A stretch of DNA of 64,000 bases from Oopsacas minuta (GCA_024704765.1 JAKMXF010000110.1:558001-622000); one strand, 5' to 3'; shown: positions 989 through 63,228, numbered from the stretch's first letter. A program made the numbers and translations. Notes: generated by a model from the letters alone, not told the origin.

Positions 989-1127
989 AACTGTAGTATT
1001 TTAAACTTAATAATCGTGTATTTGAATTTGATATTATTTCATAGATTTTAGTGTGAAGCTCCTTAGGGAGACGCCCCTTGGCTATTGCCTGTACCTCCGC
1101 GGTCCCTGAGAAATACTACTCAAAGAC

Positions 1128-1912: not shown

Positions 1913-1936
1913 GAATTGAATTGAAACTATGGATTA

Positions 1937-1992
1937 CAGTGTAACCTCCAGAAGCGGGAGGACTAATCTCCCCGCTTCGAGAGGTCTCACTG
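1937..1992. mobile_element. 56-bp palindromic micro-MITE (CAGT termini, TA target-site duplication)
   Basis: TA|cagtgtaacctccagaagcgggag-gactaat-ctccccgcttcgagaggtctcactg|TA. Confidence 0.7.
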
Positions 1993-2330
1993 TAATCAGG
2001 CCAGGGTAGCTTGAAATCGAGACTGGGGCAAGTCCCAGGAACTAGAGAACTGTTTTAGTATCAAGGCTAAGTATTGAAATAACTGTCAGTGAATTTTTCG
2101 TGTCTCTACGGTGCAAACTATAAACCTAGGAATTTGAACTTTTTCAAATTGGTGCAAATAACTGTCTTACTCAATACCGCAAATTGGAACAATCATAGTT
2201 CCATTTTATAACACATATACACATTTATCCTATTATATCACTAATAGAATACACACTACATACTATATAGAAGCAATAAACCAATCAAATCAAAGGGGGG
2301 GAACATTAATTAATAAAAAGATACATCAAG

Positions 2331-36640: not shown

Positions 36641-37244
36641 ATACCTGATTAGTTCTGTTTAGACTGAATTTATTGTAATTTTGTTATTATTTCTACTAAC
36701 TACATTTCTTAATTACTAAATATTTATTGTTCATATAATTATTACTAGAATTCACAAATTTTGTATTTATAGATACCTTCGAAATGTGGCATACCTCCAA
36801 GATGCGACACAATCCTAACACCAATTCATTTTTCAATGCTAATAATACAATAGACACTTGCGGCATAATAGGAATAACAGCTGTACTGGATTCATAGAGA
36901 TGTCAACCTTGCGTCTCACAGTTTTACATTTAGAGCCACGAAAAATACCGTGAAAGTTGCCATCTTTACAGGATTTCGGAGTCAGTATAATACAGGCCCG
37001 CGGAATGAAAGTTTTAATAGTCAGGTAATGGTTGGATCTGCCGGCCATGTAATATAAGCATTGAATATCAATTAGTGTATAGGGCTGTGCTTACTCAGCA
37101 TCTGGGAGACTGACACATTTCAGAAGGGCAGTAAATGTTGGAAAGGTTTACATATATATACAAATTTTGAAAAGTAAATATTAAATAGTTAAGAAAGTAG
37201 CTAGCACGAAAGATAATTCTGTATAAACAGAACTCAGGTATATA

Positions 37245-38500
37245 CTAATAGAAGGGATCCTTCTTCATCTTTGTAGGTATGGGGCTAGTAACACCTTTAT
37301 ATATTGTAGGTGTCAAACTTTTCAAAGCTACACTATTGTTAACATCAAAGTAGAATCGTATAAACAAAGAGTTGTTAGCTGTTAAGTAATGTGTGTATTC
37401 CCAAGCTGATTCAAGAAACATAACATCACTGACTCCTATCTTCAGTTGATAATTCATTCTTCCTTCTTCATAATAAGGTTTTGTGTAATCTTGTTTGTTA
37501 ACTATAATTACTCTGTAATGAGTGATAAAATCTTCTCCTAAAATGTTGTCAAATTCTCCAGCAATCCTCTTGAGATAGAATTTTAAATTTTCCTCACCGA
37601 ATATCCGAACTGTAGTACAATATATTCTCAGTTTGTAGTTGTTAAGAGAGAACTCTGGTCCTTCAATCTGTATTCCAACAAGTAGTTTATTCATATTCTT
37701 TATTTCCCACTCAACTCCATCAAGTTGCTTCATTATCTTTCCCTCCATTTTCATTTCAATTTTTTCCTTCTTCAGTTGTTTGATTTCAATTAAGCTCATG
37801 TCTGTATGTTCTAAGATATACTCCTTCTTGTGAGCTAGGAGATCTCTTCTTAACATAGACTTTGCTTTACATCCATATTCTGAAAAGGGACAGCTAATCT
37901 CTTCTAACTCACACTTCGCTCTGTGTTCAGACAATACACCTCTTGGAAACTTATCTCTACATTTATTTGGGCAAGAAATCGGATATTTCGAGCAAACATC
38001 AAAATGTTTTTCCTGGTCTATTGCTTTTTCCTTTTTGTTACAATAACGACAACTGATTATCCGCATTGGACATAAATCTCTACAATGCTCTTCACTCTCT
38101 CCTCTCAGAAATATCTGTTTGCAGTTATTACATTGTATAAGGAATACCTTACACTCGACCAAATGTTTCTCAGCTTCTGACAATTTTCCCTTCCAATAAC
38201 AATCTCTGAGGAGAGGACACTTTATTTGTAAATTTTCTATAGCACTTTGTACAGCTTTAACTGGATTGAGTTGTCTTGGAGTTTACTACAAACCAAACAA
38301 GTAGTATCTCCTCTACAGAAAGAAGCTTCTCGCATTATTCCTGTACATTTCTTACAAACGATAAATCCTTCTTCCATTTCTGACAGGTTCTGAGCTAAAT
38401 AGTTCCTTTTATACCCACAATACATATCTTTCTTTCCCTCAACTTTCTTGACATACAACAGATCGTTTGAGTTGTCTGGGGGATTATCTTTAGATGCCAT
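37245..38500 (-). pseudogene. TRAF-like gene with MATH domain, inverted near-identical copy of 35708-36640; 1-nt frameshift near 38285
   Basis: tagt-aaactcc versus tagtgaaactcc in the + copy; the ORF is split into 38500-38237 and 38183-37245; may be an assembly indel. Confidence 0.7.
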
Positions 38501-41819: not shown

Positions 41820-42129
41820 TAGAAGATTGAGTGAAGTAGCATTCATCAATGAAAAGGAAGATACAAAATGTTAATATATAATTATCAGTTAAAAGTGTGT
41901 ATAATATATGTAACCTCTTTACTATATTACACTGCATGATATTTACACTTTTTCAAAACACATATTTCCTCAAATATATGGTCACTTAGAAAGTTGCTAA
42001 ACATGTGAACATACCCGAAGGACTTTATGAGTAATATTCTTGGGTATCGTATTTCTAACTATATGCAACACAATGTGGCCGCATATAAATAGGATTATAA
42101 TGAACTGAATATTAATGAACTGTCTATTC

Positions 42130-43484
42130 ATGGCATCTAAACTAGTTCCACTACCTGACAACAGAGAAGACCTGCTCTATGTTAAGAATTTTAAGAAAGG
42201 TAAAATAATCCATTGTGGGTATAAGAGGGACTATTTAGCTAGGAACCTGACTGAAATGGAGGAAGGGCTTGTTGTTTGTAAAGAGTGTTCTGGAATAATG
42301 CGGGAAGCTTCTATTAGTAACGGCGAGACAACTTGTTTAGTTTGTAGCGAATCTCAAGACTTAAACCCGGTTAAAATGGTGCATAATGCTGTCAATCAAT
42401 TGGAAGTTAAGTGTCCTCTCCTCAGAGATTGTATTTGGAATGGTAAATTATCAGAAGCTGAAAACCATTTAGATAATTGCAATAGCTTTGTACTACAATG
42501 TGTAGATTGTAAAGTAACAGTTACTAAAGGTGAATATGATAACCATGAAGTGAATACGTGTATTTTACGTGAGATAGAATGTGAATACTGCGGTAAACAA
42601 GGAAAGGCTAAAGATCTGGAAATACACAATGAAGTATGTGATGAGTATCCTATTTCTTGTCCTAATAATTGCGGAGAAAAGTTTCCAAGAAGTAAATTAT
42701 CCAACACAAGTCCGAATGTGAGTTAGAAGAGATTAGCTGTCCCTACACAGAGTATGGATGTAAGGCAGAGTCTATGTTAAGAAGAGATCTCCTAGCTCAC
42801 AAGAAGGAGTATATCGTAGAACATACAGACATGAGCTTAGTTGAAATTCAGGAACTGAGAGAGGAAAATAATAGTTTTAAGAAGGAAAAAAATGAGATGA
42901 AAATGGAGGGAAAGATAATGAGGCAACTTAATGGAGTTGAATGGAAAATAATGAATTATTATAAACTACCTATTAATGGCAAGCTAGAAGGACCGATATT
43001 TTATATTAACAACTACAAACTGAGAATATATCTCACCAAGGGCCCAAGATTTTCTGAAAATTATCTCGAATTCTGTCTACAAAGGTTACCTGGAAATTTT
43101 GACAGATCTTTAGGGAAAGCCTACATAACTCAATACAGAATTATTAGTATTAATAAACAAAATATAACTAAATCAGATATAAAAGATGGAATACTGGATT
43201 ATGAGCTTTGTATCGGTAAATACAGTAAACAGTTCCGCGTGGGTTATTTCTGTAATTATCGAGATTGTATTACAGCAGATAATTCCTTGTTTGTGAGATT
43301 CTACTTTGAAGTCAATTCTGAAAAGACTATGGAAACATTGATGACTCTGGAAGAATTGATGTCCCGTGACCAAGATACAACAGAACTCACCTGTCAATCA
43401 CCATCTGATCCTTTCCATGAAGTTTCATTTCTAGAGCTATCGATAACCAATTACAATCCTTTAAGCTTAAATAAGATACTTTGA
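42130..43484 (+). pseudogene. TRAF-like gene with MATH domain; 1-nt frameshift at ~42702
   Basis: Adding one base restores LSQHKSECELEE (paralogues have LLRHKAKCELEE and LSEHRAKCELEE) and fuses ORFs 42130-42726 and 42774-43484; may be an assembly indel. Confidence 0.7.
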
Positions 43485-44038
43485 ATAGTTCTGTTAGGTA
43501 TCTTGTCTATTCTAGTTAGAATAATACATCTTTGATTTTATTAGCATTTTACTGTATTGACTAATATTCCATAGAATAGTGGCTCAGTTCTAGAATGGTT
43601 GCCTTAGTATAGTTAGTATATATTTATGTGTGTTTTCGCTCTGTTGTCACACCTTTAGAGATTAAGACACCATATTCGGTATGTATACTTGTATTGATAC
43701 CATATATTTGAAATTGATCTTTTGTGTATATTTTCACACCTTTTGACACCTCAGCGTTGGTAGTAATAAATAATCTACAAACCTTGCACGTATGTATATA
43801 CACTAGAGTCTCAGAATAATTGACACATTGGGGGCATCGCTTCTGTCCACTTCTCGGAGTGTCCGTTTGGGAGACTCCACTGTGAATACCTAGCAAGATA
43901 TACGAATGAGTTCACCTTGGGGTAATAAATAGAAGACATGACATTATTTCTAGATTTATTTGTTATCTTTACCGCACTATAATCAACAAACAAATAGAAT
44001 TAAACTAGTATAACTAAGAATAACATTCTGTGATAAAC

Positions 44039-44218
44039 ATGGAATCTGAATTGATATATCTAACAGCTGATGTTATAAATGATCTGCTATATGTTACCAC
44101 ATATAAGAATGGTAAATTCATCTACGCTGGTAAGACCTTCAGTGAATCAGTTCTGGAAATTTATTCTATTCAGAGTAAGAACTTCAGATATACCGTGTCC
44201 AACAATATACTCATCTAA
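44039..44218 (+). pseudogene. Possible degenerate TRAF-like N-terminal fragment
   Basis: NDLLYVTTYKNGKFIYAG resembles EDLLYVKKGKKGKSIHCG of the neighbours; the similarity stops there. Confidence 0.3.
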
Positions 44219-44564
44219 GTTGGAAGACTTGGATCATATTTCTTACCTTACTGAAGTTCGTATCTCTTAACAGTTACTCAATTCAACCATTGTGTATACT
44301 TAGCAACGCAGTAGCAAACAGATTACAATTGGTTATGACCGTAAGGTGACCATATACAAAATTTATGGAATTGATGCGTTTGAAACCTGACCAACGGGAT
44401 GGTCTCCTCCGGCCTTGTTGTGAATGATAAAATATGATTGCTTTTCTGCAAAAAGTTACATTAAACGTAGTTATGCTAGATATCACATTACATCTGTAGG
44501 CAACACAAATGTACTGGAGAAGTATAACTAGAATACTAGTGAACTGATTTTCTATCAAATAATC

Positions 44565-45878
44565 ATGGCCTCTAAACTAGTTCCACTACCTGACGACAGG
44601 GAAGACCTGCTCTATGTTAAGAAAGGTAAGAAAGGTAAATCTATCCATTGTGGGTATAAGAGGGACTATTTAGCTAGGAACCTGACTGAGATGGAGGAAG
44701 GGCTTGTTGTTTGTAAAGTGTGTTCTGGAATAATGCGGGAAGCTTCTATTAGTAACGGCGAGACAACTTGTTTAAATTGTGGTCCAAGGAAGTTTAACCC
44801 TGTTAAAATGGTGCATAATGCTGTCAATCAATTGGAAATAAAGTGTCCTATCCTCAGAGATTGTATTTGGAATAGTAAATTATCAGAAGCTGAAAAACAT
44901 TTAGATAATTGCAATAGCTTTGTACTACAATGTGTATATTGTAAAGTAACAGTTACTAGAGGTGAATATGATAACCATAAAGTGAATACGTGTATCTTAC
45001 GTGAAATAGAATGTGTTTACTGTCGTAAACAAGGACTTGCTAAGGAGCTGGATAAGCATTTTGAAGTGTGTGATAAGTACACAATTTCTTGCCCAAATAA
45101 CTGTGGAGAAGAGTTTCCGAGAAAGCAATTGCTAAGACATAAAGCAAAATGTGAGTTAGAAGAAATTAGCTGTCCATACACAGAGTATGGCTGTGAAGCA
45201 AAGTCTATGTTAAGAAGAGATCTCCTAGCTCACAAGAAGGAGTATATCGTAGAACATACAGACATGAGCTTAATTGAAATTCAGGAACTGAGAGAGGAAA
45301 ATAAAAGTTTTAAGAAGGAAAAAAATGAGATGAAAATGGAGGGAAAGATAATGAAGCAACTTGATGGAGTTGAGTGGGAAATACAGGATATAGATAAACT
45401 AACTAATAACAAGAAGCTAGAAGGACCGATTTTCTATGTCAACAACTATAAACTGAGACTATTTCTCATAAAGCAATACATGGAATTTGGAGTTGGCCTC
45501 CGATTCCAGCTGAACAAGATTGAAGGCAGATTTGACAAAAATTCAGAAAACGCGTATATCACTAACTACAGAATTATTTGTGTCAACGAACAAGACATTA
45601 CTCAATCGTATTCAGAAGATGGACAGTTGGACTTTGAGCTCTGCAATGGTAAATACAGTGAATTGTTTGGTTATATTTCAGAATTCCATAGCGGAATTAC
45701 AACAAGCAAGCCCTTTGTTATAAGATTATACTTTGAAGTCAATTCTCAAAAACCTATAAAGCATATCTCGTCGTCAAACGAAGAGAGTTCATCATTTCAT
45801 GCATCGTCAGAACTCTCTGACCCGTTTATATTATCTTTTGATGATATAGTTTCCTCACAGAATAAGTACACTAATTAG
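44565..45878 (+). CDS. Intact intronless TRAF-like protein (degenerate RING, zinc fingers, coiled coil, divergent MATH)
   Basis: 437-aa ORF; tandem paralogue of 42130-43484; VEWEI...LEGPIFYVNNYKLRL MATH start. Confidence 0.85.
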   Translation: MASKLVPLPDDREDLLYVKKGKKGKSIHCGYKRDYLARNLTEMEEGLVVCKVCSGIMREASISNGETTCLNCGPRKFNPVKMVHNAVNQLEIKCPILRDCIWNSKLSEAEKHLDNCNSFVLQCVYCKVTVTRGEYDNHKVNTCILREIECVYCRKQGLAKELDKHFEVCDKYTISCPNNCGEEFPRKQLLRHKAKCELEEISCPYTEYGCEAKSMLRRDLLAHKKEYIVEHTDMSLIEIQELREENKSFKKEKNEMKMEGKIMKQLDGVEWEIQDIDKLTNNKKLEGPIFYVNNYKLRLFLIKQYMEFGVGLRFQLNKIEGRFDKNSENAYITNYRIICVNEQDITQSYSEDGQLDFELCNGKYSELFGYISEFHSGITTSKPFVIRLYFEVNSQKPIKHISSSNEESSSFHASSELSDPFILSFDDIVSSQNKYTN

Positions 45879-46470: not shown

Positions 46471-49400
46471 TTACGCCTCCGCTTCTTCATCTCCTCCTCT
46501 TCCTACAGCCTTGCTAGGAGATTTTGTCCTGTCCACATACTCGAAGAAGGCCTGTCTGGTCAGATGCTTTTCTCTCAGAATCATAGTTTGTATTGATTCG
46601 GGTATGTCTGGTATTAGCCAGGCTATTAGTGCAGTCAGTATGAACACAAAATGCTAAAAGAAATATATGTAAATGGATACAGTTGTGTTGATCTATTAGT
46701 AAATGCTCTTTGGCAAGTTTTAAGGGGCAAATGATTTGTCATTTATACAGAAAAGGTTGCTAATTTGCAATGGAAATTCATGCAAATATGACTCGCAGTT
46801 ATGTAAAATACACCTTGATTTTTGTCTGTGTCGCTGGTGCAAGCCAACAATCTGATTAGCCGCATTCAAATTATTAATAAAGTGGTAAATAGTAATCCCA
46901 GCTGATACTTGCACCAAGAATGCAATCAATGGCCATAGCAAGTCAATGCAAAACAGGCCAATTAGTGAGTATGAAAATTCCGGTAAAACGGTGGTTACAC
47001 AGCTGTTTCTATCTCTATTTTACACCCTACTATTCCTCACCTCAAACAAAAGCACAAACACAACTTTAGCTAGAGACACTCTGAAGAAATACTCATTATG
47101 AGGAGAATTCTCTGCAAAAGGATTTGGTTGAAACCTTCCTCTAAACCTAAATAGAAACAATAAATATACACTTGAGTGGACATATTTGGAGATCATGGTC
47201 TCTAAATGGAGCCCACTACTGCCTACAGTCTTTCCCGAGGCGATATATACATACATTTGATAGGCAATTATCTACTCCACATACTCTGAGTAAAAATCGA
47301 GACAACTAATTTAGTGGACATCGCAGAAGGTAACATAATTAATTAAACTGGACTCCAATAATGTGGGACAATTTACGTTTTTGGCAATTTTCGGGAGAAT
47401 ATTTGTCTCAATTCCAGACGTCCCGCCAAAAACAGGCTATAGTTGCCAAGTATGCGATAGAGTTTTTGAGTCGGATAGCACGTATAAGTTACCTGCAGAA
47501 CTGTCCTGGAACAAGTCTTGATACATTACAATACAACGAATCATCATAGCTACTATTGGGGAGATTTCTATATAGAATATCTGTAACATTAGCTGCAGGA
47601 GCCTGAATACGAATAGATTCACAGCATGTAACACCGGGCGCAGTTACATTCCATATTGTTGAGCAGTTCGGGCTGTTGTTGGATCCGCAACATTCAATTC
47701 TAAAATAATTACATTAATAATATTATATTAAATCGTATAATTATTTTGTAATACAAACAAAGTTCAAACTCACGCTCTAGACAAATATGGTTGGTAAAGG
47801 GGGCAGCCCTCATCATCAGTACAATTGGGGTCTGTAAGTCTCTGGAATGATGGATCGGGGAAAGTCACTGAATCTAAAAGGTTCTCGATCGGAACAATAC
47901 CTAGCGTCCAGTTGAAAAACCCGTCAAGATTATCATAGTTTGCTATGCCGAGAGGATTAATTGAAGCATAGGACGCTCTGTCGATGAATGTTGCAGTGAA
48001 CGCAATAAGGAATGCCTATACGCAATAATATATGACACTAGACACTGCTAATGAGTAATTTATTTCAGCTCCACATGATCTCCCATCTAAGCATACGGGC
48101 AGGTGGAATTTCATATCTAACCAGTTTATGACGTTACCATAACACAAAGTAGACAATTCAGGAAAATTTCAATGGTTCAACTTGTAAATATGGTAATTAA
48201 GCGTGTTAGAGGCGGTCTGTGAGGATAAAATCACTACTATTCACCCGTTAGCTAGTAAATATATTGTGTAGTTGAATTTCAATGATAAAAATGGTGAAAT
48301 AATGAAAATATTCATGTGACAGGTAAAATCGACTCGGGGGCGGTGGAGTATACGACTATACGAAACATATAAACTTACATTACTGATGACTGCACACTTG
48401 GCGATTGTATCTAGAATTGAATACCATATGCCAATATCTGCTGCTCGGATGGCAACAACTTTACGCTGTAGACAAAGGTATTTGAAGGCGTCCAATCGAA
48501 TTTCTGCATAGTTGTTGAGAAGTGCAAAAAAAGGAGCCAAGGGGAAAGATGCGACGAATAGTGTGACGAAGCCGAATTGGATAACTATAAATAGAAGTTA
48601 AGAGATAAGTGGTTCCCAATCTGGGGTACACGGATCCCTTGGTGCTACACAAATGACAGTAGGGGGTCCAGTCCAAAAAATGTTGGGAAATTATCCTAAG
48701 ATTAGAAAATCCAGTTTTCAATATCTTTTCAAGAAACAACTTTATTCCAAAGGAGAATATATAATATTTTTTGGGAGTATACTACCTGCTACATTTATGG
48801 ATGTAAAAGTTACTTACTTAATTCAAGATATTCTCCAAATAGACCAAACGAGTCCTCTGGAGGGAGATCAAAATCCTGTTCGTAACGGGTATAAATGTCC
48901 TCTTCCTTGTCCGCTTCAGTCTTCTTACGGTTCTTGAACCAATTTATGAGACGTTTGATTATATACTTAACAACAGGCACACCAAGTTCTTTCCCATTAT
49001 TCAATATCTGTTTACCCAGAAATACGATTGCAAGTTGTAGACACAGCTCAAGAAGGCATCCATAAGGTTGGCACTAATGGTTTTATACATTGATTAATAC
49101 TTTCCAATTTGTGATAAATCCAGGAAAATATTGGGAAATGTCTTCGCCAATTTTCCCGAAAAAATAGCCAGAAAATGCTATTTATGGTTGTAAACTTGGA
49201 AATCTCAGGAAATTATTGTTCCTAATAGCCATTACCCAAAGGGTCAACTAGTAAGTATCAGTAACGTAGGGCAAGAGAGCGTGTGAGACCCCAGAAATTC
49301 TGAACTTCCTGATTTAATTATAAATTGTTTGTTTGTTTGTTTGTTTACTATAAACAACATACCTCCTCCAGTTTAAATCCAGGTATACCAGGGTAAGGTA

Positions 49401-52400
49401 CAAACAGCTTTCCTTTTATAAATGCAATATAGAAAATTGAAGAATAGAAATTCACACATTGGAAGACGAACATCTTGAAAGTGAAACTGTCTTCATGCTC
49501 GGTTTGCGTGCGATGTAACTCCCAGTCAGTTAGTATTAAAGCGAGGTATGTGTAGATCTAAAAATAGACAAAGGAAATTTACTGTTGTCCTCATTCATTA
49601 GTATTGTGACTTATATTTTACAATGGTTGTGAAGGACTTGTTAGAGCTACAGAACCTGAAATTTGGCATTTCTATACAAATTAGCTGAACTTCGAAAATT
49701 TTAATATATCAAACAAAAATCTTCACAAATGTCTGAGAAAGGGTGACAAAATCTTTTTGACCTATCAGATTTGAAGATTTACAAAGTGTATAGACAGAAC
49801 TATTACGATTGGATTTCTAACACTGTAATTTGATTGGTGTAGGGAAATACCATCAACATACCTTGTTCATAATAACAATGAATACCAGCTGTAAAACAGC
49901 TGCAGATATACTAACACAAATACCAATAAATGGCACAATTGACGCGTAACCATCTCTAGCTGCTATAACACTCAATTCATTTCTTGTTAACACTTTATAG
50001 AAGATCACTGCTATCACAAATATTACTACAACCGTTACAGTTGTAGCCAGGATACTTATTGTGCCCATAATCTTGCTGAAGAAAATGAACTGTGGCTGTT
50101 TGAATTCTTCTATCTACAAATTTATGAAGGTTTATACAAGAAATATACAAATATCCATGGTTAAAGATGCTTTTAAAACAATAACTATTTGCAAACAGGA
50201 GTTTATATGAGCCGACTCCCTGTTTGCAATATTCTTTGGGAAATAACCTTCAGAAAAAATTGCATATCAAAGTACAATTTTCGATTCTATGCAAGTTATT
50301 GTGAAAATACTTTGAATATTTGATAATTTACCTTAGTAACAGGATCATAGTCAAACCAATAAGCTTTCCATCTCTCAGGAAAGATTTCATGTCCTCTCTT
50401 CACTCCGAGTTCATATTTAGGACGTGGTTGTTGCTAAAAACAAGTTAAAATAAATAAATTCAGAAATACTCTTTGCGTTTGCTATGATTAATCACCTCTT
50501 CCTCTTCAAATCCCAAAAGATCCCATTCGTACTGAAGGGTAGACTGTTGTCTCTTCCAAGATTCCAAGAATAGAGTACCTATTTATATACAGAGGGAATT
50601 AGGATTCCACTTAGAATTCTGAATACAGTCGAAATCGTGTTCTTGCCACAAAAAATGCAAGAGACGGGGATAACAGGGGAAGAAACCGTGGAGGAAATAC
50701 GATTTCGACTCTATGTTAATTTTGCAGAAATTCTGCCTGCAATATAATTATGACATAATAAATAAGGTACTTACACCAAAAAGACATGAAAATAGCAAAC
50801 AAAACAGTCCCTTCATTGTCAAACAATAGAGCGAACTACAAATAAACAGAATAATAAATACAAACAAACAAATTAATAATATCCCCTTATTTGGTATCAT
50901 AACTTACCCAAAATGCTGTACACGCAGATTCCAGAAACCAAAAGTCACATTTACCACCGTTACAAATTGGACACATGTAGTAATCCGTGGGTGGGTCATT
51001 GCAGGCTTGCCTCCTATAAAACATATGATGTCATAATAATTTCTGATGTCAGGTGCCAACTGAGGTTATTATGAGTATACACGCTAAATTTGTTAATCTC
51101 CAAGGCGTGATCAAGAGAGTACACACAGAAAATTGGAAATATATACTAGCCAATACAGTATTGTCTGCACAGTAAAAATAGTTTCAAATACACAAAAACA
51201 CATACGTAATAGTGTACATGTTATTGACTATGTTATTGACTATGTTATTGACTAGTTTTCCATATATGTAAGTATGTTACATCTACAAACAACTCACGCA
51301 ATAGGATTTCTTGCTGTTCCTAGTGTAGTCAGTCCGTAAATGAACACCAGAATACCAATTATGGTTGAGAGATGCAGCCATTTAGTATAGGTGCCTGCAA
51401 ATTATAATAAAATGAAAAATAAGTATATACACAGACAATTCCCCTCAAATCTGAATTGTATAAAGATAGTCCTAATCGTAGCATAAGTTCATCGGCTATA
51501 TCTAAGGAATTATCGCGATCCATATACGTAACAGGAGTTGAGTGTGTATTTATATGAAAGTTTGTGTAATTCAGAATTGCAAATGATTTGTAACTTACCA
51601 AGGAATGCGAAATAGATAGCAACTTTCTCACCAAAGTATTCTCTAAACAAGGAAACAAAAGTAAATAATAATAAATAATCATAGAAACAAACATACCTTA
51701 TTTCATCCAAAGGTTGTTTCTTGTAGAAAGCCCAAGGGCTAGCCCATTCACGGAAGAGTGACTAAACAAGTACGAACACAAATAAGTAAACAAACTTACA
51801 AACAAAGGTTAATACATAAACAATCACATACTTGTCTGAAGTTGATAGGGTCTCCTCTGGGCTTAACATAGTAGTTACCATCATGTAGTGGAAATGCAGC
51901 TGAGTATACTCCTTTATCCAACAGCCTATCGATTCCTATAGAATTACAATGTGTATGAACAATGTACGTAGATATGCTTAGACCCACTTCACTTGCTCGC
52001 AACTCTTACCAGTGTTTCAATCAAATTGGACAAAATATCCAAGATTTCAATCTGTGCGGACAGCTTAGTATACCAATTGAATTTTCTTTATTAGAGGCAC
52101 AATGAAGATTTACATTATACCAATATGCTTAATGCCTCCAATTAATAGTGCTGTTTTTAATATTTTCAAGTGATATACTAAGCTGTTGGCAGTAAACTCT
52201 TTAAATATGTCAGTTACCTGTTTTGGGATCATTCTTTTTATACGGCGTATCCATTAAGAGATTATAAATCTACAAATATTCAAATGAATAAATACTTTCC
52301 TAGTTTGTTAACAAATTCAAAATACATACAATCAAGCTTCTCTGTGCATCTGTGAAGAATGTATCCTTATTTTCATGTCCAATGAAGCTAAGAAACAAAC

Positions 52401-53992
52401 AAATATAAACTCACTACGTACAAACGGTCCATGCAAACAGGACAACATGTGAATTGGTTAGATTCACCTATACATTTCCAAGATTTATACTCATAAAACT
52501 CACTTTTCCAAGTTCTGAGGCTTGAAAATAGCAGTGTAAACGTCCTTAGCTTGAAATTTCTCAGGGAATACAGGTTCAGTTGGATCTTTGATCTTGCAAC
52601 ATTTCAATATTTTCTCTAAGAGAGTCGAGCTACTCGTATCTTGATCCTAGATAATATTCAGGTAGCATCGAGAGCTTAAGATAGGTATTCTACACATTTT
52701 GTATAGTATACATATATACTTACATGGATGGGAACACGTAGATTGATCTTCTCAGCGTATTGTGCTAGAATCTTCCAAGTTCCATGGATTTTCACAAAGG
52801 TTGTCTTGCAATCAGGAGATTCCTGCAAAAGTAATTGAAGTATAATAATATATGAAGTGAATAGAGTCCAGGTGAAGGCGGCAGCAGGATTCAAAAGACC
52901 CCTTGGATGTAATTTTGAGCCAAGCTACGAGTAGTTGGAGTGGAAGTTTGGAATTGGCCGTTATCAGCACTGTAGCTACAGCCAATATTATGTCGTTTGA
53001 ATTTAATCACTGATAAAAATTACAGAATTTTCATGAGTTTTATACGGCCATGTGTGGGACATACGGTACCAAAATTCCACCGGGCCTGTTATTAATGACA
53101 AAACTTACATCTGGATTTTGGATTTCAATCTCAACTCCTGCCTTTATCAGTTGATTAGTGAAGTACTCTCTCATTTCTTCCTTTTCATTTTCTTTATCAC
53201 TGGGAGTACCATCTTTCTGAGTTGTCTTTGCGTAGGTCAGAATAAAATCTATAGAACAAATCTGATATTCAATATTTATGTATGTTGGAAAGTGTATGCA
53301 ACCTTGCAAATTTGTGCAATTACATTGTATGTAGCCCTAAGGCTGCAACCGAATATCAGTATTCGGTATTCGGTTGGCCCAGACCGAATATCATCAGTAG
53401 TATTTGGTTGATCTAACCGAATATTATCAGTATTCGGTTAGGCTACTATTCATGAATACTGATATTCGGTTCTAGCGGTTTCAACCTTGGTTGCCATACA
53501 TATGGTTGCATTTTGCATGTTGTTAAGTTTCAAAAGGGCCGTTGATTGAAACGGATTCAAAATTTGCCGTCTTGGGTAAATATGAAACTGTGCGGTCTTA
53601 TTTCCAATTTCCAGTAAGGTTTAACCAAATCCAAAGATTATTCCATTCCAAAATATGTACTGCCCTAGAAGACTGCATAGTTCGTTAAGTGGAAGGCCAG
53701 GCCCATGTCTTAAAATTTGAAACATAACTAACCAATTTTCCTGACTCCATCATTAAAGAATACACTCCTCTCTTTAGCAGCCTACAAACAAACAAAATTA
53801 TAAGTACAATTCGCACACAAATCTCACTTTCAAATACAGTGGCAACATGATCCCCCTATCTCATGCTACCTTATTTTCTTCGGGGTTTTTCATATCCTCC
53901 ATCTTAACAGATTCCTTTGAGGGACTCCCTGGTCCCTCTGGTCCACTCGCTGTTGTAATTTGAGGCTCCAAAGCTTCATAGCCGGAAGCCAT
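46471..53992 (-). CDS. Anoctamin/TMEM16 (Ca2+-activated Cl- channel or scramblase), multi-exon, with N-terminal dimerisation domain; shortest N-terminal variant shown
   Basis: FFNDGVRKI|DFILTY; VKIHGTW..LAQYAE; [10 protein letters not shown]; [15 protein letters not shown]; EYLEL|[33 protein letters not shown]; AWLIPDIP; stop at 46471. Paralogue not assignable by eye. Confidence 0.9.
53338..53480. repeat. Internally repetitive palindromic element (accgaatatcagtattcggt units) in an anoctamin intron; MITE-like
   Basis: Several inverted aaccgaata/tattcggtt motifs. Confidence 0.6.
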
Positions 53993-55078
53993 GCTAATTA
54001 AATTATACTCTCGTTAATACGAATACCGAGTATCAGTGGCAATTGTCCTTAATCGAAGTTTCATTGAAATACATTGAAGATGTACAAATATAAGAGAATC
54101 CACAGTATACTTATATGGAAATTATTTGGCTGTAGACGTGTGTGATATATGAGGGGTGTTTCTTTGTATATTTTATGATTTGAAGATTTTGAATAATTAG
54201 AATTTGAAAGCCGAAATGCTCTGTAGCTAATGGAATTTTTATAATATGTGTATATATTCAATTATATTGGCATCAACAACATAATTAAGTTATGCTAATC
54301 ATCCACAAATTGAATGTAAACAATCGGCCAAATGCGCTTAATTAATTGAAATTCTCCTGCAAGTATTTGAAAGAAACTTTTGGGTACAAAAAATCATTAA
54401 AAGTGTCTATTAAACACAAATAGTGCCTCGAATAATAAAATAGTTGATTTTGTTGGACAATCGGTAAATACCGAATATATATCTCTACGAGTCCTGACAA
54501 TATACCTATAGCATTACACTGATAATGTGGTAGAGTTATGAAATATAATAAATAGAATATTTCCATAATTTGCTATAATCGAATCTAACACATAGAAATA
54601 TGGATTTGTGAGTGAGACATGCGAATTTATTATTCAGAGATAGTTACAATGTATTTTTATTCAAGTCTGTTATATTATAGAAAACTGTTCAGACAATTAG
54701 AATCCCACATTTATAGTATATTATGTTTTCAAATGGTCGCGGTTGTGGGTTGGAATCGCTATCGTTTTCTAGATGTTCCTTTCCCCATAGGGTGTTTCCA
54801 GCGCCCCCCATACCCCAGCTAGAACTTGTGTCTCTCAAATTTCAAACCCACACGGGGCCACACGAATGGTTGAAGCAGAGAACGTTTATCTTGAAGCATA
54901 CTTTTATGAATTTTAAGACATGCATTTGTATTATTGATATGTGGCCTTACTCATAATTGTCCCTCGGGGAGTACGCACATGACCACACGTTACCACTATG
55001 CTGTTACCCTTTGGAAGCGTGTCGTCACGTTCGAATGGTGTCCTACACAAACATTTACAAATACAATGTATCAATTAC

Positions 55079-55138
55079 CGGTTTGCATCCGATGAGGGTA
55101 CACTCTTCGCTTTGAGTCAACTCAATATCATCAGCCAT
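55079..55138 (-). CDS. Anoctamin alternative first exon B (MADDIELTQSEECTLIGCKP)
   Basis: ATG, 20 open codons, phase-0 GTAATT donor compatible with the phase-0 common exon at 53781. Confidence 0.6.
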
Positions 55139-55799
55139 GAATAATAAAATTTCAATTACTTAAATTCAATACAAAATGTCTTATAGCTAACTTAGCTAGT
55201 GAATATTGGACAACTGGTTAGAAAACCTATACAGTTCGTAGATAAAGTGAAGTCTTTTTGATTCTATGAATAACTTTGTGCATTTCTATTCATTTGAATC
55301 CGTAATCTATCCCGCACCTTTTTGCTTAAAAATATTGGTAAAATTGTCTATTCATTTTCAGATACCACACCGTTATTAATTCATTCAAAGGCTTTATAAT
55401 ATTTTCACAGGTTATACAAAAATAGTATATTTCATTATTGTATGTAATTGTGCTAGTTCAACAAATTCGAGCCAAAAAAAGCTGATAAAATAGCGCTCAA
55501 GGGTTCTCGCTCCATATTTGAAGGGGCGGACCCTTGAAGTGTCCATATTTGACTTCTTAGTGTGGCTGATATAAATTATTCATTGACTAATCTCAATTCT
55601 ATGAATATTCAGCTAAAAAGATGAAAGGCAAAACTACTCAATCTATTCCTTACGTAGATTGAATGAATAAGTACAGTCAGCTCCAGTTATATCGAAGCTG
55701 AAGGGACCGCGATGATTGCTTCGATATATCCGTGTTCGGTTGACTATAGATTCATGTGTGTATTTCCTTAAAATATATTAAAACCCTATGAATAATTAC

Positions 55800-55889
55800 C
55801 TTGATTTCTTTTTGAGATGATGATGGTGCAATCAATGGCTGCTCGGTAAGCTCGATTTCCTTAGAAGGCTCAATATCATTGTCTGCCAT
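55800..55889 (-). CDS. Anoctamin alternative first exon C (MADNDIEPSKEIELTEQPLIAPSSSQKEIK)
   Basis: ATG, 30 open codons, AAG|GTAATT phase-0 donor. Confidence 0.7.
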
Positions 55890-56737
55890 TGTAAAATTAT
55901 GAAAACTGATTGGCTAAACTGCTACAACGCTTCCCAGATTGGTATAAATAACTGGACTGGGCCTATGATTCAAATTAGTAGTTCTAGAATTTCTAATCAG
56001 TTTTGTAGTCAATTACGTGCAATCTGATATATCAATGAAATTCTATCTTTTTACACATATAGAATCAAGAAAAAATATATTTTACTGGTAATAGTGATAT
56101 AATTGGAATTACAGATAATGTTACCACCCCTCAATATTAACCCATTATGTGGACATTTTATATTGGACCACAAATTTTTGCATTTATAGAAGAGTAATTC
56201 ATTTGGAACTTTATTGTCTATGTGTCCATTATTGAAATCAGTGTTAGGTGAAAGTATTTGCATTGTCATATTGGAAGTAATGATAATATTTGATAATGTC
56301 ACAGTTGCAGAATTGGTTGCCCTTTATATGATAGCTAAAATATTGCAATACAATTGTTCTGTACAGAAATATATGTCACTCGATTTGATCAAATTTTAGT
56401 GCATTTTATCTACAAGAACCCTGCAAAGACTTCGAATAATGAGTGAGAATTCCGAGTGTATTATTTAAAAATTTTACTGGATATATATATATATATATAT
56501 ATATAAGGCCCAGCGGACCAGACATGACATTTCTTGTACCAAGTTTTTCCAATTTGCTTCCGACTTTTGTGACCGTTTTTAACTCTTTTATAACAAACAT
56601 TTATTTCTAAAATTAGTAGCAAATCTAAGATTCCAAACTTGGTGTCAATTTTGGGTAAATTTGATTTCCAAACATTTCTATTTTGTTGAGTGGTGGGTTT
56701 CTTCAAAAAATGGATCAAAATATGTTTATTTTCTTAC

Positions 56738-56878
56738 CTCAGCTCGGGGGGTAGTTACAAGAAGCGGCGATTCTTCATTCGGAGTTAAGTTTTTAGTTTT
56801 TCTCATCTCAAACGAAACTGAATCGAGTTTCCCTGATTCACCGGAATTATATTTTTCATCCAATGTTTCATAAGCCAT
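56738..56878 (-). CDS. Anoctamin alternative first exon D (MAYETLDEKY...NEESPLLVTTPRAE)
   Basis: ATG, 47 open codons, GAG|GTAAGA phase-0 donor. Confidence 0.7.
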
Positions 56879-57507
56879 CAATACAACAACTAATTAAATA
56901 CAGATTTTTGCGATTTATAGCAATGCATAGTAGATTCCATTACGAAACCACTCAACAAATAATCCTATGCATTACTATAGGGTCTTATCGACATTCACAG
57001 AAACCATTCAATCTTACTGTAATACTTGTTTACTTCTAGTAATGAAGTTTTAATAAAGTTTCATATCAAGTGAAGCCTTCACTTGTTTCTTGATAAGCTA
57101 CTTATTTATTTATTCAATTTTCTTAACAGAGATTTTAGAATATTCGCATCAAAATGCTTACTCCACAGAAAGTACGAATATTTGTGTAGGAGGCTTGTGA
57201 GGGGTCCTTGCCCAATTGGATGGGACATGGCGCCTTAAGTAGTCCCGTCACCCGCCAGTGGGGAGTAAAGTGACCGCTGGACCTGTCGTATGGCCTCCTG
57301 TGTTCCTGTCATTGATGCCTCTTTCACCCTTGGAAACTATTCAAAATGTTTCGCCTTGAGTAAGCGTGTTGTCCATATAGGGTATTTTAGTCATAATTAT
57401 TACGTATATTTATGGCTAGAATATTAGTTCTTAATTACACTACTTGTATCATTTGTCTATGACGGAAAATATATAAATAGGCAGGTTTATCACCAAAGTG
57501 TACTTAC

Positions 57508-57949
57508 CTCTTCCTTTACTTCAATGTATTGCTCTCCCTTTCCAGTACCAGTACTACCAGGTTCCCATATTAATATATCTTCGATTTGATCAGCTGATTG
57601 GTAAGAGCCTTTCTAAAATAAGCAATATATTCAAACTTATCTATAAAGGCAACCGAATGGGCTGGCCAAAAGTGGCCGTTATATTCAGGTGACCGAATTC
57701 CTAATCCCATAATAATGAACTTCCATAAACGTGGAATTTTGTAGCAACTCCTGCGGAGGTTACACTATACATTGTATTGCCTTGATTTATAACCTTCGCT
57801 AATTATAATATTTATAGCAAAAAACTATCAACAATGAACATATCAAAAGTACAGACTCCTTCAAAATAAATACACAATAAGAACAACAAACACACTTTAA
57901 CATTTCCCGGAACAAGCCTTTGTTTCTCAGGACTAGTAGACATTGCCAT
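57508..57949 (-). CDS. Anoctamin alternative N-terminus E, two exons (57949-57896, 57612-57508)
   Basis: MAMSTSPEKQRLVPGNVK|gtgtgt ... tttag|KGSYQSADQ...YIEVKEE|gtaagt; all junctions phase 0. Confidence 0.65.
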
Positions 57950-58756
57950 CAAATGAATTTTGCATTTTACGAACGGATTAGAATATAAATATCTTCAATG
58001 AAACATACCTACTCTACTTACAATGGAATATTTTCAGTAGCCCTAGAAGAATGAGAATAAATAGAATTTTAATTAGTCTAATTATTTGAAAAATCTCAAT
58101 GAAAATGTAAGGTAATTAAGATTTGTATTTTAATGTGTGGAGCCCTTATTAGCGTATATTATTACAAAATCCAAGGCTTCACACCTAATTAAAGGAAATA
58201 TTATCACCTTGTATTTATGCAAAGAATACATGGTAGAATCAATAATTGTGTGTTTCATATTACAAAAAGTTTTTCTGGGAATATTACGTATAAAAGATCT
58301 GTAGACACACTTGGCAACTCTCTATAACTTTTCCCCGCATTTTCGAATAATTCCCGGATTTCCAAGTGCTAATAAGTTACCTCCATATGTAGCAATTCTA
58401 GGCTATCATTTCGGAAAAGAGATGCGGATATTTCAAATAGTTCCCCTGGAGTCTCAAATCAATCTCTGGATTCCTTTTAAAGCCCGGGATAATCCGGTAA
58501 GTATGCATATATGTGCAATGTGGTGCATATATAGTTATCAGTAATAGAGCAATGAATACTACAGCGGTAAAATAACCAGTCGTAGGGGGTTTCAATTGGC
58601 GGAACTTTCCCAAAATTTTTGAACACATCTGGGGACCCCTCAAATGAAATCCTACATAGCTAACAATCTGTTTATTTGGAATATGAATGAGTATGTAGAG
58701 TAACTATATATGTGTACTATTGTATTATTTGGGTATTATCCAGAAACATTAGTTGT

Positions 58757-59944
58757 ATGGCAGAAATTCTTAAAGTTAAGCCTGATTTGATCGTGGATAT
58801 ATTGTATATACAAGAAGTAATCTTTGAGTATAAGGTTGAAAAGAGTGCTGGCTATAAGAAGGACTATTTAGATCAGGAATTAGGTGAGATGGTGGTGGAT
58901 TTCATAACTTGTCCGTGTTGTAAGGGAATTATGCGAGATGCTATTATCTCTAGAGGAAAAATAACCTGTAAGGAATGTTCTACAAATTCGCTGTCAATGA
59001 ACCCGGTTGAGCAGGTGAGAAATTGTGTATCCAATCTTAAAATTAAGTGTCCACTATTGAGGGAATGTGATTGGAGAGGGAAACTATGCGAAGCAGAGAA
59101 ACATTTGCAAGAATGTGGAAATTGCCGAATTCTGTGCCCTCTGGAATGTGGCACAGTTATTCAAAGGTGTGAATATATTCACCATATCGATGTACAATGT
59201 GAACTAGGCAGAGTAAATTGTATGTATTGTGGCCAAGAATGTTTCCGTAAATCTTTATCCAGACACCTAGAATTATGCCTTGAACTTCCGGTCAAATGTG
59301 ATTGTGAGGAAGAATTTAGCCTACCAGAATATGCTAGCCATATTGATACTGAATGCCCATTGTCTTTGATGGAATGTCCTTATGCTAAATATACATGTAA
59401 CGTTGGCTCTATTTTCAGAAAAGACCTTTTAGCACATAAAAACGAATACTATATCGAGCACCAAGACATGATGGAAGAAGAACAGGGTCGAATTAAAAAG
59501 CAAATGAATTCAATTGTTGTTGAATTGAACGTGAAAAGAGATATGGAGAAAATTGAATGGAAAATATCAGATATCTCATCGATCGAAAATGAGCTATATG
59601 GACCTACTTTCAAAACTGGAGCTTCTAGGTTTAGATTAATGCTGCATAGAATTGGCCCATTGTGCATTGGCATCAAAAAATTGGGCAGAAGTGTACTTTC
59701 TGATCCACAAGCAACCTCATTTCAATTATGTTTGACCTCAGTTAAAGAGTTAGTGGAAATGTATCACGCTGAAACATCTATAGCTAATAGGGATGTAGGA
59801 CAAACGATGTATCCACTATTCAACCTAACAGAACAAATACTCTCAGAGTATGTTCACCCTGACAACAGTCTTGTTATCAAAATATGCTTCAAGGTGATCG
59901 ACTTAAGAGAATTTCGGTGCCTTGAATTAAATAACACCATTTGA
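58757..59944 (+). CDS. Intronless TRAF-like protein, cluster 2
   Basis: First plausible ATG at 58757; GYKKDYL, CPCC...TCKEC, KCPLLREC.W.G, zinc fingers, IEWKI MATH-like end. Confidence 0.85.
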   Translation: MAEILKVKPDLIVDILYIQEVIFEYKVEKSAGYKKDYLDQELGEMVVDFITCPCCKGIMRDAIISRGKITCKECSTNSLSMNPVEQVRNCVSNLKIKCPLLRECDWRGKLCEAEKHLQECGNCRILCPLECGTVIQRCEYIHHIDVQCELGRVNCMYCGQECFRKSLSRHLELCLELPVKCDCEEEFSLPEYASHIDTECPLSLMECPYAKYTCNVGSIFRKDLLAHKNEYYIEHQDMMEEEQGRIKKQMNSIVVELNVKRDMEKIEWKISDISSIENELYGPTFKTGASRFRLMLHRIGPLCIGIKKLGRSVLSDPQATSFQLCLTSVKELVEMYHAETSIANRDVGQTMYPLFNLTEQILSEYVHPDNSLVIKICFKVIDLREFRCLELNNTI

Positions 59945-60305
59945 ATATTCCTTGTAATTTTTTGATAGCTCTCTTGAGATTGTTGACAAATGGGTTGACC
60001 TATCAGATTTGAGTGTTTACCTAATACATGTAGGCTGATAATTATTGTATATTTGTAAGTTACTTAGTGGTTTGTGCCTATTTGAGAGTCTAAATTGATT
60101 GGTTTAGAGGAATATAATTAAATTACATTTGATTCTGACAACCAAATCTACGAAAAGGCATGCATGTAATGAAGGCATTGTTGCTATACAAGAGGTTCTA
60201 TTAATTAAATCCGATTCAAAACGTGATAAACAAACAATCTCATGTCCACACAATAAAATAGTAACTTGATTAATCCCATAAACAAGTAAATACGATGGAA
60301 ATCTC

Positions 60306-61442
60306 TTAGACTTTAGACTCATAATACATCCTGAAGGTTAGACTATCATCTTGTTGAATATATTTCGAATACGTATCCTTGTGTATAGCAAACAAATCTC
60401 TTCGTTTTCTGTCTACCTCGTTGTTAGCAACGGTATATTCTTCGTGGTGTAAATCAAATTCATTATCCGGCATGCTTATGAGTAGTTGGCAATGGGTGCT
60501 ATGGTTGTCTGAGAATAAATTACGTCCACTGTTACATAGTTGAATGATTAGCGATTCCCCGATAATAGCGAATGTTTTGAATCTTGAGTTTCCAGAAATG
60601 AAGATAGGTCCTTCATTATCTCCTTCTATATCTGTGTGAAGATTGAATTCTACATACTCCATATCTTTCTTAAACTTCAGTTTGGTGCTAAGCGCATTAA
60701 CCTGCAATATTAATTTGCTGTTCTCTGCTTCGAGCATGTCTTGGTGTTCAATATAGAATTCTTTCTTATGATCCAACAGGTCCTTCCTCAGAATTTTCCC
60801 TATATGACAGCTGTATTTCGCATACGGGCAGTCCACCTCAGCCAATGGGCATTCATCCCCAATATGCATAACATATTCATTACGACACAACTCCTTCCCA
60901 CACTCGCAATTCATTGGTCGAAACATGCAATTTACCATATGCCCCGTTATTTCTAAATACTTCACTGTCTCGTCACAGAAATCGCACTTAACATCATGAA
61001 GGGGGCAAACTTGTTCCGTATGATTAACCATGGCATCTCTCTCGATAACACTTCCACATAATAATGGACACAGTTGACGTAAATTGGGACACGTTCCCAC
61101 ATGTGCGATCGCTTCCATTAATTTTCCCTTCCAATCACAACCTCTCAAAAGTGGACATTTTATGCTTAAAGTCAAGACACTATTTCTTACCAGATCAACT
61201 GGATCAGCCATATGTGGACTTCTGTTACATGATCTACAAGTAATCTTACCTTCCCTAACGCAAGCTTCACGCATTATGCCATCGCAATTAGGACAAGTCA
61301 AAAAATTCCCCGCTAATTCGTTTAACTGTTCTTCTAAATAGTCCTTTCTATACCCATAATGACTTCCTGTACCATGCCTGCTGTTAGTTACAAATAAAAT
61401 GTCATTAATATCATCGGCATTATTTGCTTCGCCCTCAGTCAT
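60306..61442 (-). CDS. Intronless TRAF-like protein, cluster 2
   Basis: GYRKDYL, CPNC...TCRSC, KCPLLRGC.W.G, CPYAKYSC, short divergent MATH-like domain. Confidence 0.85.
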   Translation of the reverse strand: MTEGEANNADDINDILFVTNSRHGTGSHYGYRKDYLEEQLNELAGNFLTCPNCDGIMREACVREGKITCRSCNRSPHMADPVDLVRNSVLTLSIKCPLLRGCDWKGKLMEAIAHVGTCPNLRQLCPLLCGSVIERDAMVNHTEQVCPLHDVKCDFCDETVKYLEITGHMVNCMFRPMNCECGKELCRNEYVMHIGDECPLAEVDCPYAKYSCHIGKILRKDLLDHKKEFYIEHQDMLEAENSKLILQVNALSTKLKFKKDMEYVEFNLHTDIEGDNEGPIFISGNSRFKTFAIIGESLIIQLCNSGRNLFSDNHSTHCQLLISMPDNEFDLHHEEYTVANNEVDRKRRDLFAIHKDTYSKYIQQDDSLTFRMYYESKV

Positions 61443-62046
61443 TTGTCATTTGGTGGTAAAAACTTGATACTAAGAATATGTAGTTTTCAAATCATTTCCA
61501 CCTATGCTTTATGTACATATATCTAGACAATGAGTGCCCACATAATGTATAATATTTCAGAATACAAAAAGGGGTATTGGATGTCACGCAAATATGTTTT
61601 GTAGACTAATTCTCTCATCTCATTAATATTGTAAATTCTCTGGTTAATAACAGCATAACAACAAGAAGTTTGGTGAATATTCGAATAATTAACAACTGCC
61701 CTGCTTTCTCTGACAATTGTCATAACTTGCTAAAGAGCTGAATTTTCTGGGGTTTTTATGCCAGGAATTTTTAACATACAATTCAAACACAGTTCTTCGT
61801 CTCGCTATTCCTTCATTCTGGATGCAAGTGTCAGCAATAAAATATATGGCAAGGTTCCTAGCTTTCTTCTAAACTGTGTATATATCTGTTTCAGTGAACT
61901 GCCCAGCGCTTAGTTATAATGGTACAACAAAATCTCCTTACAGTGAAGTTAATAGGCAGTAAAACTTATGTAATATAATATTCGAATTATATTCTTAGTG
62001 CCTTGAATATATTAATTATTATAATTCTATAGAACTCACAAAGAAC

Positions 62047-63228
62047 ATGGCAGTAGAACCAGATGACAATGAACTTACGCTATACACACAAGTGGAGATC
62101 GATGATAAAGAAGAAATCAGCTATCGTGGTTACAAGAAAGACTATTTATCTCAGAATCTAACTGAAATGGAGTATCAGTTAATAATATGTCCATTATGTA
62201 AAGGCATAATGAGGGATGCGTGTGCCTATCAAGGAGAAATAACCTGTATGCTCTGTAGCCAAGATAATACTAACCACAACCCTGTTATTCGAATAAGGGA
62301 ATTGGTCGCGAAACTAGGTATAAAGTGTCCACTTTTGAGAGAATGTAATTGGACAGGAGAGTTAATTGGAGCGGAGGATCATTTACTTATATGTGAAAGT
62401 TCATTAATTTTGTGTCCTCTGGAGTGTAAAAGTGTGGTAAAAAGGTGTGAAATAGATACACATACGGGAGACCAATGTGAACTAAGAAAAGTGGAATGTG
62501 AATTTTGTAAGAAAATTCTTCCGTTTCGCGGACTGATCAGCCATCTAGAAATATGTCCCTCTCATCCAATCAAATGCGAGTGTGGTAACGAATTCCAACG
62601 TTGCAAACAGGAAGCGCATATTGAGACTGAATGCCCATTGGCTGAAGTGGAATGCCCTTATGCTATTTATAGCTGTGGTGTCGGGAAAATGTTCAGGAAA
62701 GAGCTTTTGGCGCACAAAAAAGATTTTTACATCGAGCACCAAGATTTGTTGCAAAGCAAATTTGAAGAAGAAAATCATATTTTAAGGGAAAAGTTGAAAA
62801 CGAAAAAAGACCTCGATGGATTTGAATGGGAAATATATAATTTTTCAAATTTTAAATTTGATAAAGACATAGAAGGGCCAACATTTTTCATCGGAAACTA
62901 TGAACATGCTTGCGTGTTGCATTTAAGTGAGAAATTAAATATTAAGATCTTGAGGCTGCATTTCAATCCAAAAGAACGAATGGAAATTTACATAATCGAG
63001 TGCAGATTAGTAATCGACAAAACGATCGAAACACAAGAATCATACTTCGAAACGAAAATGTTTACGAAAAGAATTCCAATTGCAAATATGGTTGAGCCAC
63101 TATTCGCGTTAGATAAAACTTTGTATTCAAAATATATTCAAAAAGATGGCTGTCTTCGTATCAAAATGTACTTTGATTATGTCAACAGCATACGAAAGAA
63201 AGACAAGGACAAGATTAAAAGTCTGTAA
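62047..63228 (+). CDS. Intronless TRAF-like protein, cluster 2
   Basis: GYKKDYL, CPLC...TCMLC, KCPLLREC.W.G, FEWEI...EGPTFFIG MATH-like. Confidence 0.85.
   Translation: MAVEPDDNELTLYTQVEIDDKEEISYRGYKKDYLSQNLTEMEYQLIICPLCKGIMRDACAYQGEITCMLCSQDNTNHNPVIRIRELVAKLGIKCPLLRECNWTGELIGAEDHLLICESSLILCPLECKSVVKRCEIDTHTGDQCELRKVECEFCKKILPFRGLISHLEICPSHPIKCECGNEFQRCKQEAHIETECPLAEVECPYAIYSCGVGKMFRKELLAHKKDFYIEHQDLLQSKFEEENHILREKLKTKKDLDGFEWEIYNFSNFKFDKDIEGPTFFIGNYEHACVLHLSEKLNIKILRLHFNPKERMEIYIIECRLVIDKTIETQESYFETKMFTKRIPIANMVEPLFALDKTLYSKYIQKDGCLRIKMYFDYVNSIRKKDKDKIKSL

Follow-up and report, generated by a model that had tools for sequence, protein, structure and literature searches.

Multiple probable alternative first coding exons upstream of an anoctamin gene in Oopsacas minuta

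Results

An Anoctamin Gene on the Minus Strand

The window analyzed here, a stretch of 64,000 nucleotides (nt) from Oopsacas minuta (GCA_024704765.1 JAKMXF010000110.1:558001-622000), is AT-rich animal DNA (about 35% guanine plus cytosine, GC) with small exons and GT..AG introns. Its minus strand carries an anoctamin gene that extends from approximately position 53781 down to 46474. Upstream of this gene, on the same strand, lie five units that start with ATG, named A to D and the two-piece E, and these units probably include several alternative first coding exons of the gene. In a preliminary description of this DNA, the locus had been presented as an anoctamin with five alternative N-termini spliced onto one constant body.

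The anoctamin identity was borne out by comparisons of several kinds. Exon pieces matched the Pfam families Anoct_dimer (PF16178, E 1.6e-06 and 1.9e-09) and Anoctamin (PF04547, E 2.2e-18). When the transmembrane exon 48373-48597 was compared with the solved structures in the PDB, Anoctamin-1 was at the top (E 8e-14), with Anoctamin-6 and Anoctamin-10 behind it. The same exon scored 55 bits against Anoctamin-1 and 38 bits against Anoctamin-6, a comparison of a single exon that bears on the choice between an ANO1/2 channel and a scramblase; the gene model was examined exon by exon, and the assignment to an ANO subfamily therefore rests on single exons. Furthermore, exon-by-exon matches at 40-68% were obtained to full-length relatives in a representative library, including one of 958 amino acids (aa; P0062), and exons were also matched to the contig of a related species that is described below. 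As judged from its sequence, the gene is an anoctamin (TMEM16).

The first constant exon, here called the common exon, carries the first conserved anoctamin motif (FFNDGVRKI/D, the slash marking the exon boundary). In relatives, the motif F.DG.RKID[FY]VL starts at residue 12-54, behind unrelated tails. The common exon has a strong out-of-frame ATG (aatgATGg) and lacks an in-frame one; hence, an ATG-bearing exon is required upstream of it.

Candidate First Exons and Their Promoters

All five units are located on the minus strand upstream of a single phase-0 acceptor at 53781 (Table 1). Their lengths are all divisible by three, they contain no stops and each of them is directly followed by a phase-0 GT donor. 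Every coordinate, ATG start, open frame, donor phase and acceptor phase in the preliminary description was confirmed. As judged by eye, none of the units needs an acceptor of its own, and an AG is present 2 nt before the start codon of A. The description had also stated that none of these exons appeared in the open reading frame (ORF) track, and this did not hold: with the 45-aa cut-off, C, D and E1 are listed, extended into the introns.

Table 1. Features of the 5' part of the anoctamin gene, in positions of the window. A slash marks an exon boundary; joints are those of run X4 (see text); distances with a minus sign are upstream of the ATG.
Feature	Coordinates	Strand	Characteristics
E1, ATG-bearing 5' piece of variant E	57896..57949	-	54 nt, 18 codons, MAMSTSPEKQRLVPGNVK; donor AAA/gtgtgt
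E2, second piece of variant E	57508..57612	-	105 nt, 35 codons; acceptor ttttag/; donor GAG/gtaagt
D, candidate first coding exon	56738..56878	-	141 nt, 47 codons, MAYETLDEKY...; donor GAG/gtaaga
C, candidate first coding exon	55800..55889	-	90 nt, 30 codons, MADNDIEPSK...; donor AAG/gtaatt
B, candidate first coding exon	55079..55138	-	60 nt, 20 codons, MADDIELTQSEECTLIGCKP; donor CCG/gtaatt
A, candidate first coding exon	53870..53992	-	123 nt, 41 codons; donor AAG/gtagca
Common (first constant) exon	53733..53781	-	49 nt; acceptor tttgtag/, phase 0; 16 codons + 1 base
Constant exon 3, where the Anoct_dimer region begins	53108..53248	-	PF16178 E 1.6e-06; joints 53248>53733 and 52821>53108
Constant exon 4	52723..52821	-	joints 52821>53108 and 52645>52723; protein 81% identical to that of contig L001 of a relative
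Remaining anoctamin body, many small exons	46474..52645	-	C-terminal exon ends near 46474; matches to Pfam, PDB, P0062 and L001
TATA-like element before E1	57991-57985	-	motif scan
TATAAAT before D	56919-56913	-	41 nt upstream of the ATG
TATTTAT before C	55950-55944	-	plus CCAAT at -53 and -24
TATAAG before B	55185-55180	-	plus CCAAT at -71

A TATA-like element was found 41-61 nt upstream of the ATG in four of the five units (B, C, D and E1). Given the local density of the motif, four hits out of five would occur by chance with a probability of about 0.0025, a value obtained with a distance window that was picked after looking. No TATA-like element was found at a suitable distance from exon A; its depth in the RNA-like run X4 (see below) was 60-fold above that of the DNA just upstream, and this step argues that transcription starts no more than about 35 nt from its ATG. 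Upstream ATGs precede E1, at -16 and -57, and are also present before D. The TATA-like boxes and an adapter-bounded contig end at 55897 are hints of separate transcription starts.

Comparison of the Array with Chance

The units were compared with chance by counting ATG-started open frames of at least 18 codons ending at a phase-0 GT in the 4.3-kb region. Seven such starts were observed, versus 3.5±2.2 in order-2 Markov simulations (P about 0.10), and the average in tiles of the window was 6.8. Taken alone, this bare pattern is unremarkable. Two decoys of the same form, hydrophobic or low-complexity, were found within the region (56600-56478 and 54566-54489). A (TA)n microsatellite located between D and C (56482-56505) gives rise to one of these decoy frames.

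The composition of the units gave a different result. All of them, E1 included, start with ATGGC (Met-Ala); four single-exon candidates have this start versus 0.14 expected, and none of 2000 simulations reached four. The fraction of D/E/S/P/G/T/Q/K residues was 0.56-0.71 in all six pieces (0.71 in E2) versus 0.36±0.09 in the null ORFs, only 0.6-1.9% of which reached a hydrophilic fraction of 0.55-0.60. The GC fraction of the variable exons was 0.39-0.47 versus about 0.33 in their surroundings. The Met-Ala starts and the residue make-up of the units are far outside the null and, with the exon GC, set the claimed units apart from the decoys.

Junctions and Depth in Run X4

Four runs from the sequenced specimen were used, none of them recorded as RNA. 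X1-X3 are DNA, as their coverage was even across exons and introns. At the constant exons, X4 showed GT..AG joints (Table 1); two introns had no depth at all, some of its contigs ended in Illumina adapter and the summed depth on exons was very high. Hence, X4 behaves as complementary DNA (cDNA). The joints and loose ends of X4 described here are those of the listed rows, with 116 further loose ends outside them. On the constant exons (52500-53781), where hundreds of short variant contigs occurred, the summed depth of X4 reached 50,000-135,000 in a bin. Such values greatly exceed the expectation for the messenger RNA (mRNA) of an ion channel and reflect either extreme expression in the sampled tissue or inflation by the summing of overlapping contigs.

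The donors of A and B were both seen joined to the common exon. For A, a loose end at 53869 carried 13 letters matching, in reverse complement, the first bases of the common exon, and another contig lay entirely within the exon (53895-53964, depth 2244). For B, the joint 53780>55078 (cut +1, CT..AC) was supported by 28 letters on the side of the common exon, at a depth of 65.9. Exon C was the most abundant of the units, with a bin depth of 19124 and 13.8k-43k at 55803-55823, falling to 0 at 55746-55786, just beyond the donor; a contig end at 55897, 8 nt upstream of its ATG, was bounded by Illumina adapter. A 1470-nt contig through D stopped matching the genome at 56737, exactly at the donor, with 14 unmatched letters beyond, which implies that this donor is used. 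The intron between E1 and E2 was removed in X4 (joint 57612>57896, CT..AC, that is, GT..AG on the minus strand), with zero depth in the bin 57657-57847. The contig carrying this joint extends about 275 nt beyond 58200, so earlier ATGs may precede that of E1 in the RNA. In this single specimen, C was far above A in abundance, and A far above B, D and E.

The splicing of five starts onto 53781 proposed in the preliminary description was thereby upheld in part: junctions from more than one first exon, which it had named as a check, were seen in the X4 contigs for A and B, those of C and D are implied, and none was seen from E2.

Near exon A, the reference and a contig of X4 part at 53995, just 3 nt before the start codon, and the DNA run X1 has a contig that diverges at 54007. 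The 11 letters past 53995 in the X4 contig were not found anywhere in the window by exact and mismatch searches. Given the divergence in both runs, an upstream exon or a spliced leader before A was considered less likely than a heterozygous insertion/deletion.

Similarity among the Variable Exons

Two pairs of units share motifs, B and C having MAD(N)DIE and A and D having YE(A/T)L, and the preliminary description had taken this as a sign of exon duplication. These motifs do exist, but they are not statistically significant. A blastn comparison (word size 7) of the exons with 250-nt flanks gave only chance matches of 11-27 nt (E >=0.02). Local alignments of the peptides against shuffles, after removal of Met-Ala, were not significant for B-C (P 0.08) or A-D (P 0.10), and the best of the ten pairs (B-D, P 0.016) was lost after correction. 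The idea of duplication was left without DNA similarity and without significant peptide similarity, and was rejected at the level that these alignments can test. The exons may be old duplicates or independent in origin.

Relatives and Neighboring Sequence

A search of the representative library with the transmembrane exon returned mostly exon-sized fragments, the nearest of which (P0001) led to a contig of a related species (L001; ENA ERZ25069837, 6995 bp). This contig holds the orthologous anoctamin, with exon DNA approximately 67-86% identical (around 80% overall) and markedly shorter introns. Its 7 kb cover positions 52824-46517 of the window and begin at constant exon 4; hence, the 5' exons all lie outside it. 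When constant exon 3 was used in word searches for the 5' region of relatives, nothing was found. A repeat at 5198-5377 of the contig also matches positions 11751-11910 and 33314-33471 of the window.

Two high-copy repeats are located within the 5' part of the locus, one in the intron after the common exon (53264-53645) and the other between B and C (55556-55746). Their depth in X1-X3 was 1100-3200 versus about 70-170 in neighboring bins, and they are probably small transposable elements.

The anoctamin gene is surrounded by at least seven apparently intronless TRAF-type zinc-finger genes or remnants, on both strands (35708-38500, 42115-45878 and 58712-63228). PF02176 was found in the three that were scanned, and some members of the cluster are broken by stops and may be pseudogenes. 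One of these genes (60306-61442, minus strand) shares the strand of the anoctamin, is located upstream of it and could be a source of read-through RNA across the region of the variable exons. Other apparent single-exon genes, both on the plus strand, are an open frame of 834 aa for a class C G protein-coupled receptor (39315-41819; ANF_receptor and 7tm_3), apparently intronless, and one of 498 aa with 2OG-Fe(II) oxygenase and Ofd1_CTDD domains (23766-25262), resembling the prolyl hydroxylases OGFOD1/Tpa1.

Discussion

The results are best explained by a minus-strand anoctamin gene whose 5' end probably has several alternative first coding exons: A to D at the least, with the two-piece E as a possible fifth. 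Transcription would begin at one of several promoters, and each unit would bring a Met-Ala start of its own and a donor in phase 0, with no need for an acceptor. The first donor in the transcript would then be joined to the only available acceptor, the phase-0 site of the common exon at 53781. The variable exons downstream of the chosen one would fall within the intron and be removed, since no use of acceptors was seen in front of them. The predicted isoforms would share the entire anoctamin body and differ only in an acidic, probably disordered tail of 20-53 residues, which would precede the first conserved motif of the cytosolic N-terminal domain.

Several observations weigh against this explanation. 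X4 is the sole RNA-like run, comes from one specimen and consists of short contigs instead of reads. Joints from C, D and E2 to the common exon were not among the X4 joints listed, and no use of the E2 donor was seen in this run: the only contig through E2, which starts beyond 58200, reads past 57508 for 875 nt to the donor of D at 56737. At B, D and E the X4 depth (47-103) equals the background of the stretches between the exons in 54-58 kb (36-103) and is approximately a thousandth of the summed depth of the constant exons. Upstream of the start codons of B and D, contigs continue for about 600-875 nt with no splicing, that of the B junction as far as 55731. In the 5' third of exon C, the depth was only 114 at 55856/55858, with non-reference alleles only, versus 43k 33 bases downstream. 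Finally, exon C has five heterozygous differences in 90 nt, two synonymous and three non-synonymous, which points to weak constraint on its protein.

Much of this could also be accounted for if only C and A worked as first exons. B, D and E would then be by-products, cryptic donors in a low-level and mostly unspliced RNA starting upstream of 58.4 kb, derived either from read-through of the neighboring minus-strand TRAF-type gene or from a distal start; such RNA would contain earlier ATGs and give little protein. The equal depth at and between B, D and E, the unspliced contig of the B junction, the contig that ignores the E2 donor and the ATGs upstream of D and E1 all agree with this. However, cryptic exons would not be expected to have the Met-Ala start and the non-random hydrophilic make-up of B, D, E1 and E2, and B, D and E1 have TATA-like boxes at -41 to -47. 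Moreover, a transcription start does not interrupt a graph contig, so that the upstream run-on is neither for nor against separate starts, and one specimen cannot reveal a tissue-restricted use. We regard the by-product explanation as unlikely, while still giving it appreciable weight.

The depth profile of C has further consequences. The abundant RNA might begin inside this exon, or might enter it through the phase-0 AG at 55861-55860. In the latter case the exons would be partly serial: splicing into C, from 55859 onwards, would take place from D, from E2 or from an unseen exon located past 58.2 kb, and in the abundant mRNA C would be reduced to its 3' two-thirds and preceded by another first exon. 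This agrees with the 14-43k at 55803-55823 versus 114 at 55856/55858 and with the sequence cttctaag/GAAATC, which puts the AG at a codon boundary. Nevertheless, dips in depth prove nothing by themselves, as the tool itself warns, and the two variant places, 2 nt apart, sit in a densely heterozygous stretch that breaks contigs. The AG has a poor pyrimidine tract, no exon of matching depth is present between 55.9 and 58.2 kb, and the contig end in adapter at 55897 fits a start just upstream of the ATG of C. Partly serial splicing was consequently judged highly improbable. Barely credible is the notion that the true first exon lies elsewhere and that all five units arose as open frames by chance in AT-rich non-coding DNA. 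The bare pattern is indeed as common elsewhere in the window and in the simulations, and two decoys occur in the region itself, but RNA-type contigs use the donors of A, B, D and E1 and C is abundant, so that X4 contradicts this notion for A, B and C. The Met-Ala starts and residue make-up are also far outside the null, whereas the decoys are hydrophobic or low-complexity.

Alternative first coding exons have precedents within the family. In mouse Ano2 (TMEM16B), translation starts separately in the alternative exons 1a and 1b, and these alter the Ca2+ sensitivity (PMC3664704). The arrangement proposed here resembles it in that alternative first exons of a member of the same family are joined to common exons and only the N-terminal tail differs. 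The mouse gene, however, has two such exons, established by rapid amplification of cDNA 5' ends (5'-RACE) and patch clamp, whereas four or five are proposed here for an invertebrate and are known from contigs. The N-terminal variants V1/V2/V5 of human ANO6 differ in activation (PMC6491614), and human TMEM16A(0) arises from an alternative promoter (PMC3130926). In these isoforms it is again the very N-terminus that varies, activation kinetics or Ca2+ sensitivity being affected, and the variable tails are acidic; their variants are fewer, and the N-terminus of TMEM16A(0) is shortened instead of exchanged for another tail.

The best architectural match is plectin, in which many short, unrelated first coding exons are joined to one common exon and set the subcellular targeting (PMC3695321). 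Plectin differs in having twelve variable exons, in being a cytolinker and in that its targeting was shown experimentally, whereas targeting by the tails proposed here is a guess. The preliminary description had drawn the analogy with protocadherins and UGT1A, and it stands for the layout only. In protocadherin alpha/gamma, UGT1A and GCNT2, tandem first exons with their own reported promoters precede shared constant exons (PMC1885805), but those variable exons are paralogous tandem duplicates, each encoding a whole functional domain. The units described here have no detectable mutual similarity and encode 20-53 hydrophilic residues of disorder type.

By analogy with mouse ANO2 A/B, human ANO6 V1/V2/V5 and the plectin isoforms, the tails may tune trafficking or gating, and the choice of exon may be specific to tissue or cell type. 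Sorting-type motifs were noted by eye in the tails: A has YEAL, D has YETL and EESPLL, E2 has YIEV, and B and C contain acidic DIEL/EIEL runs. By chance alone, tyrosine-based and acidic-dileucine motifs are frequent. That the five tails form a promoter-choice system routing one channel to different membranes or cell types, in the manner of plectin, is a decidedly doubtful proposal. If true, such a targeting system would be larger than any described for vertebrate anoctamins.

Alternative promoters and alternative first coding exons are a long-established principle that will not surprise the specialist. The principle is not new here, and the locus would be a larger example of the arrangement known from Ano2, closely matching that of plectin. 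For annotation, it implies that gene predictors giving one model per gene will overlook most of these start exons of 60-141 nt. For the anoctamin family, four or five interchangeable tails on one constant body would constitute a natural set of variants for probing the poorly ordered N-terminus of these proteins.

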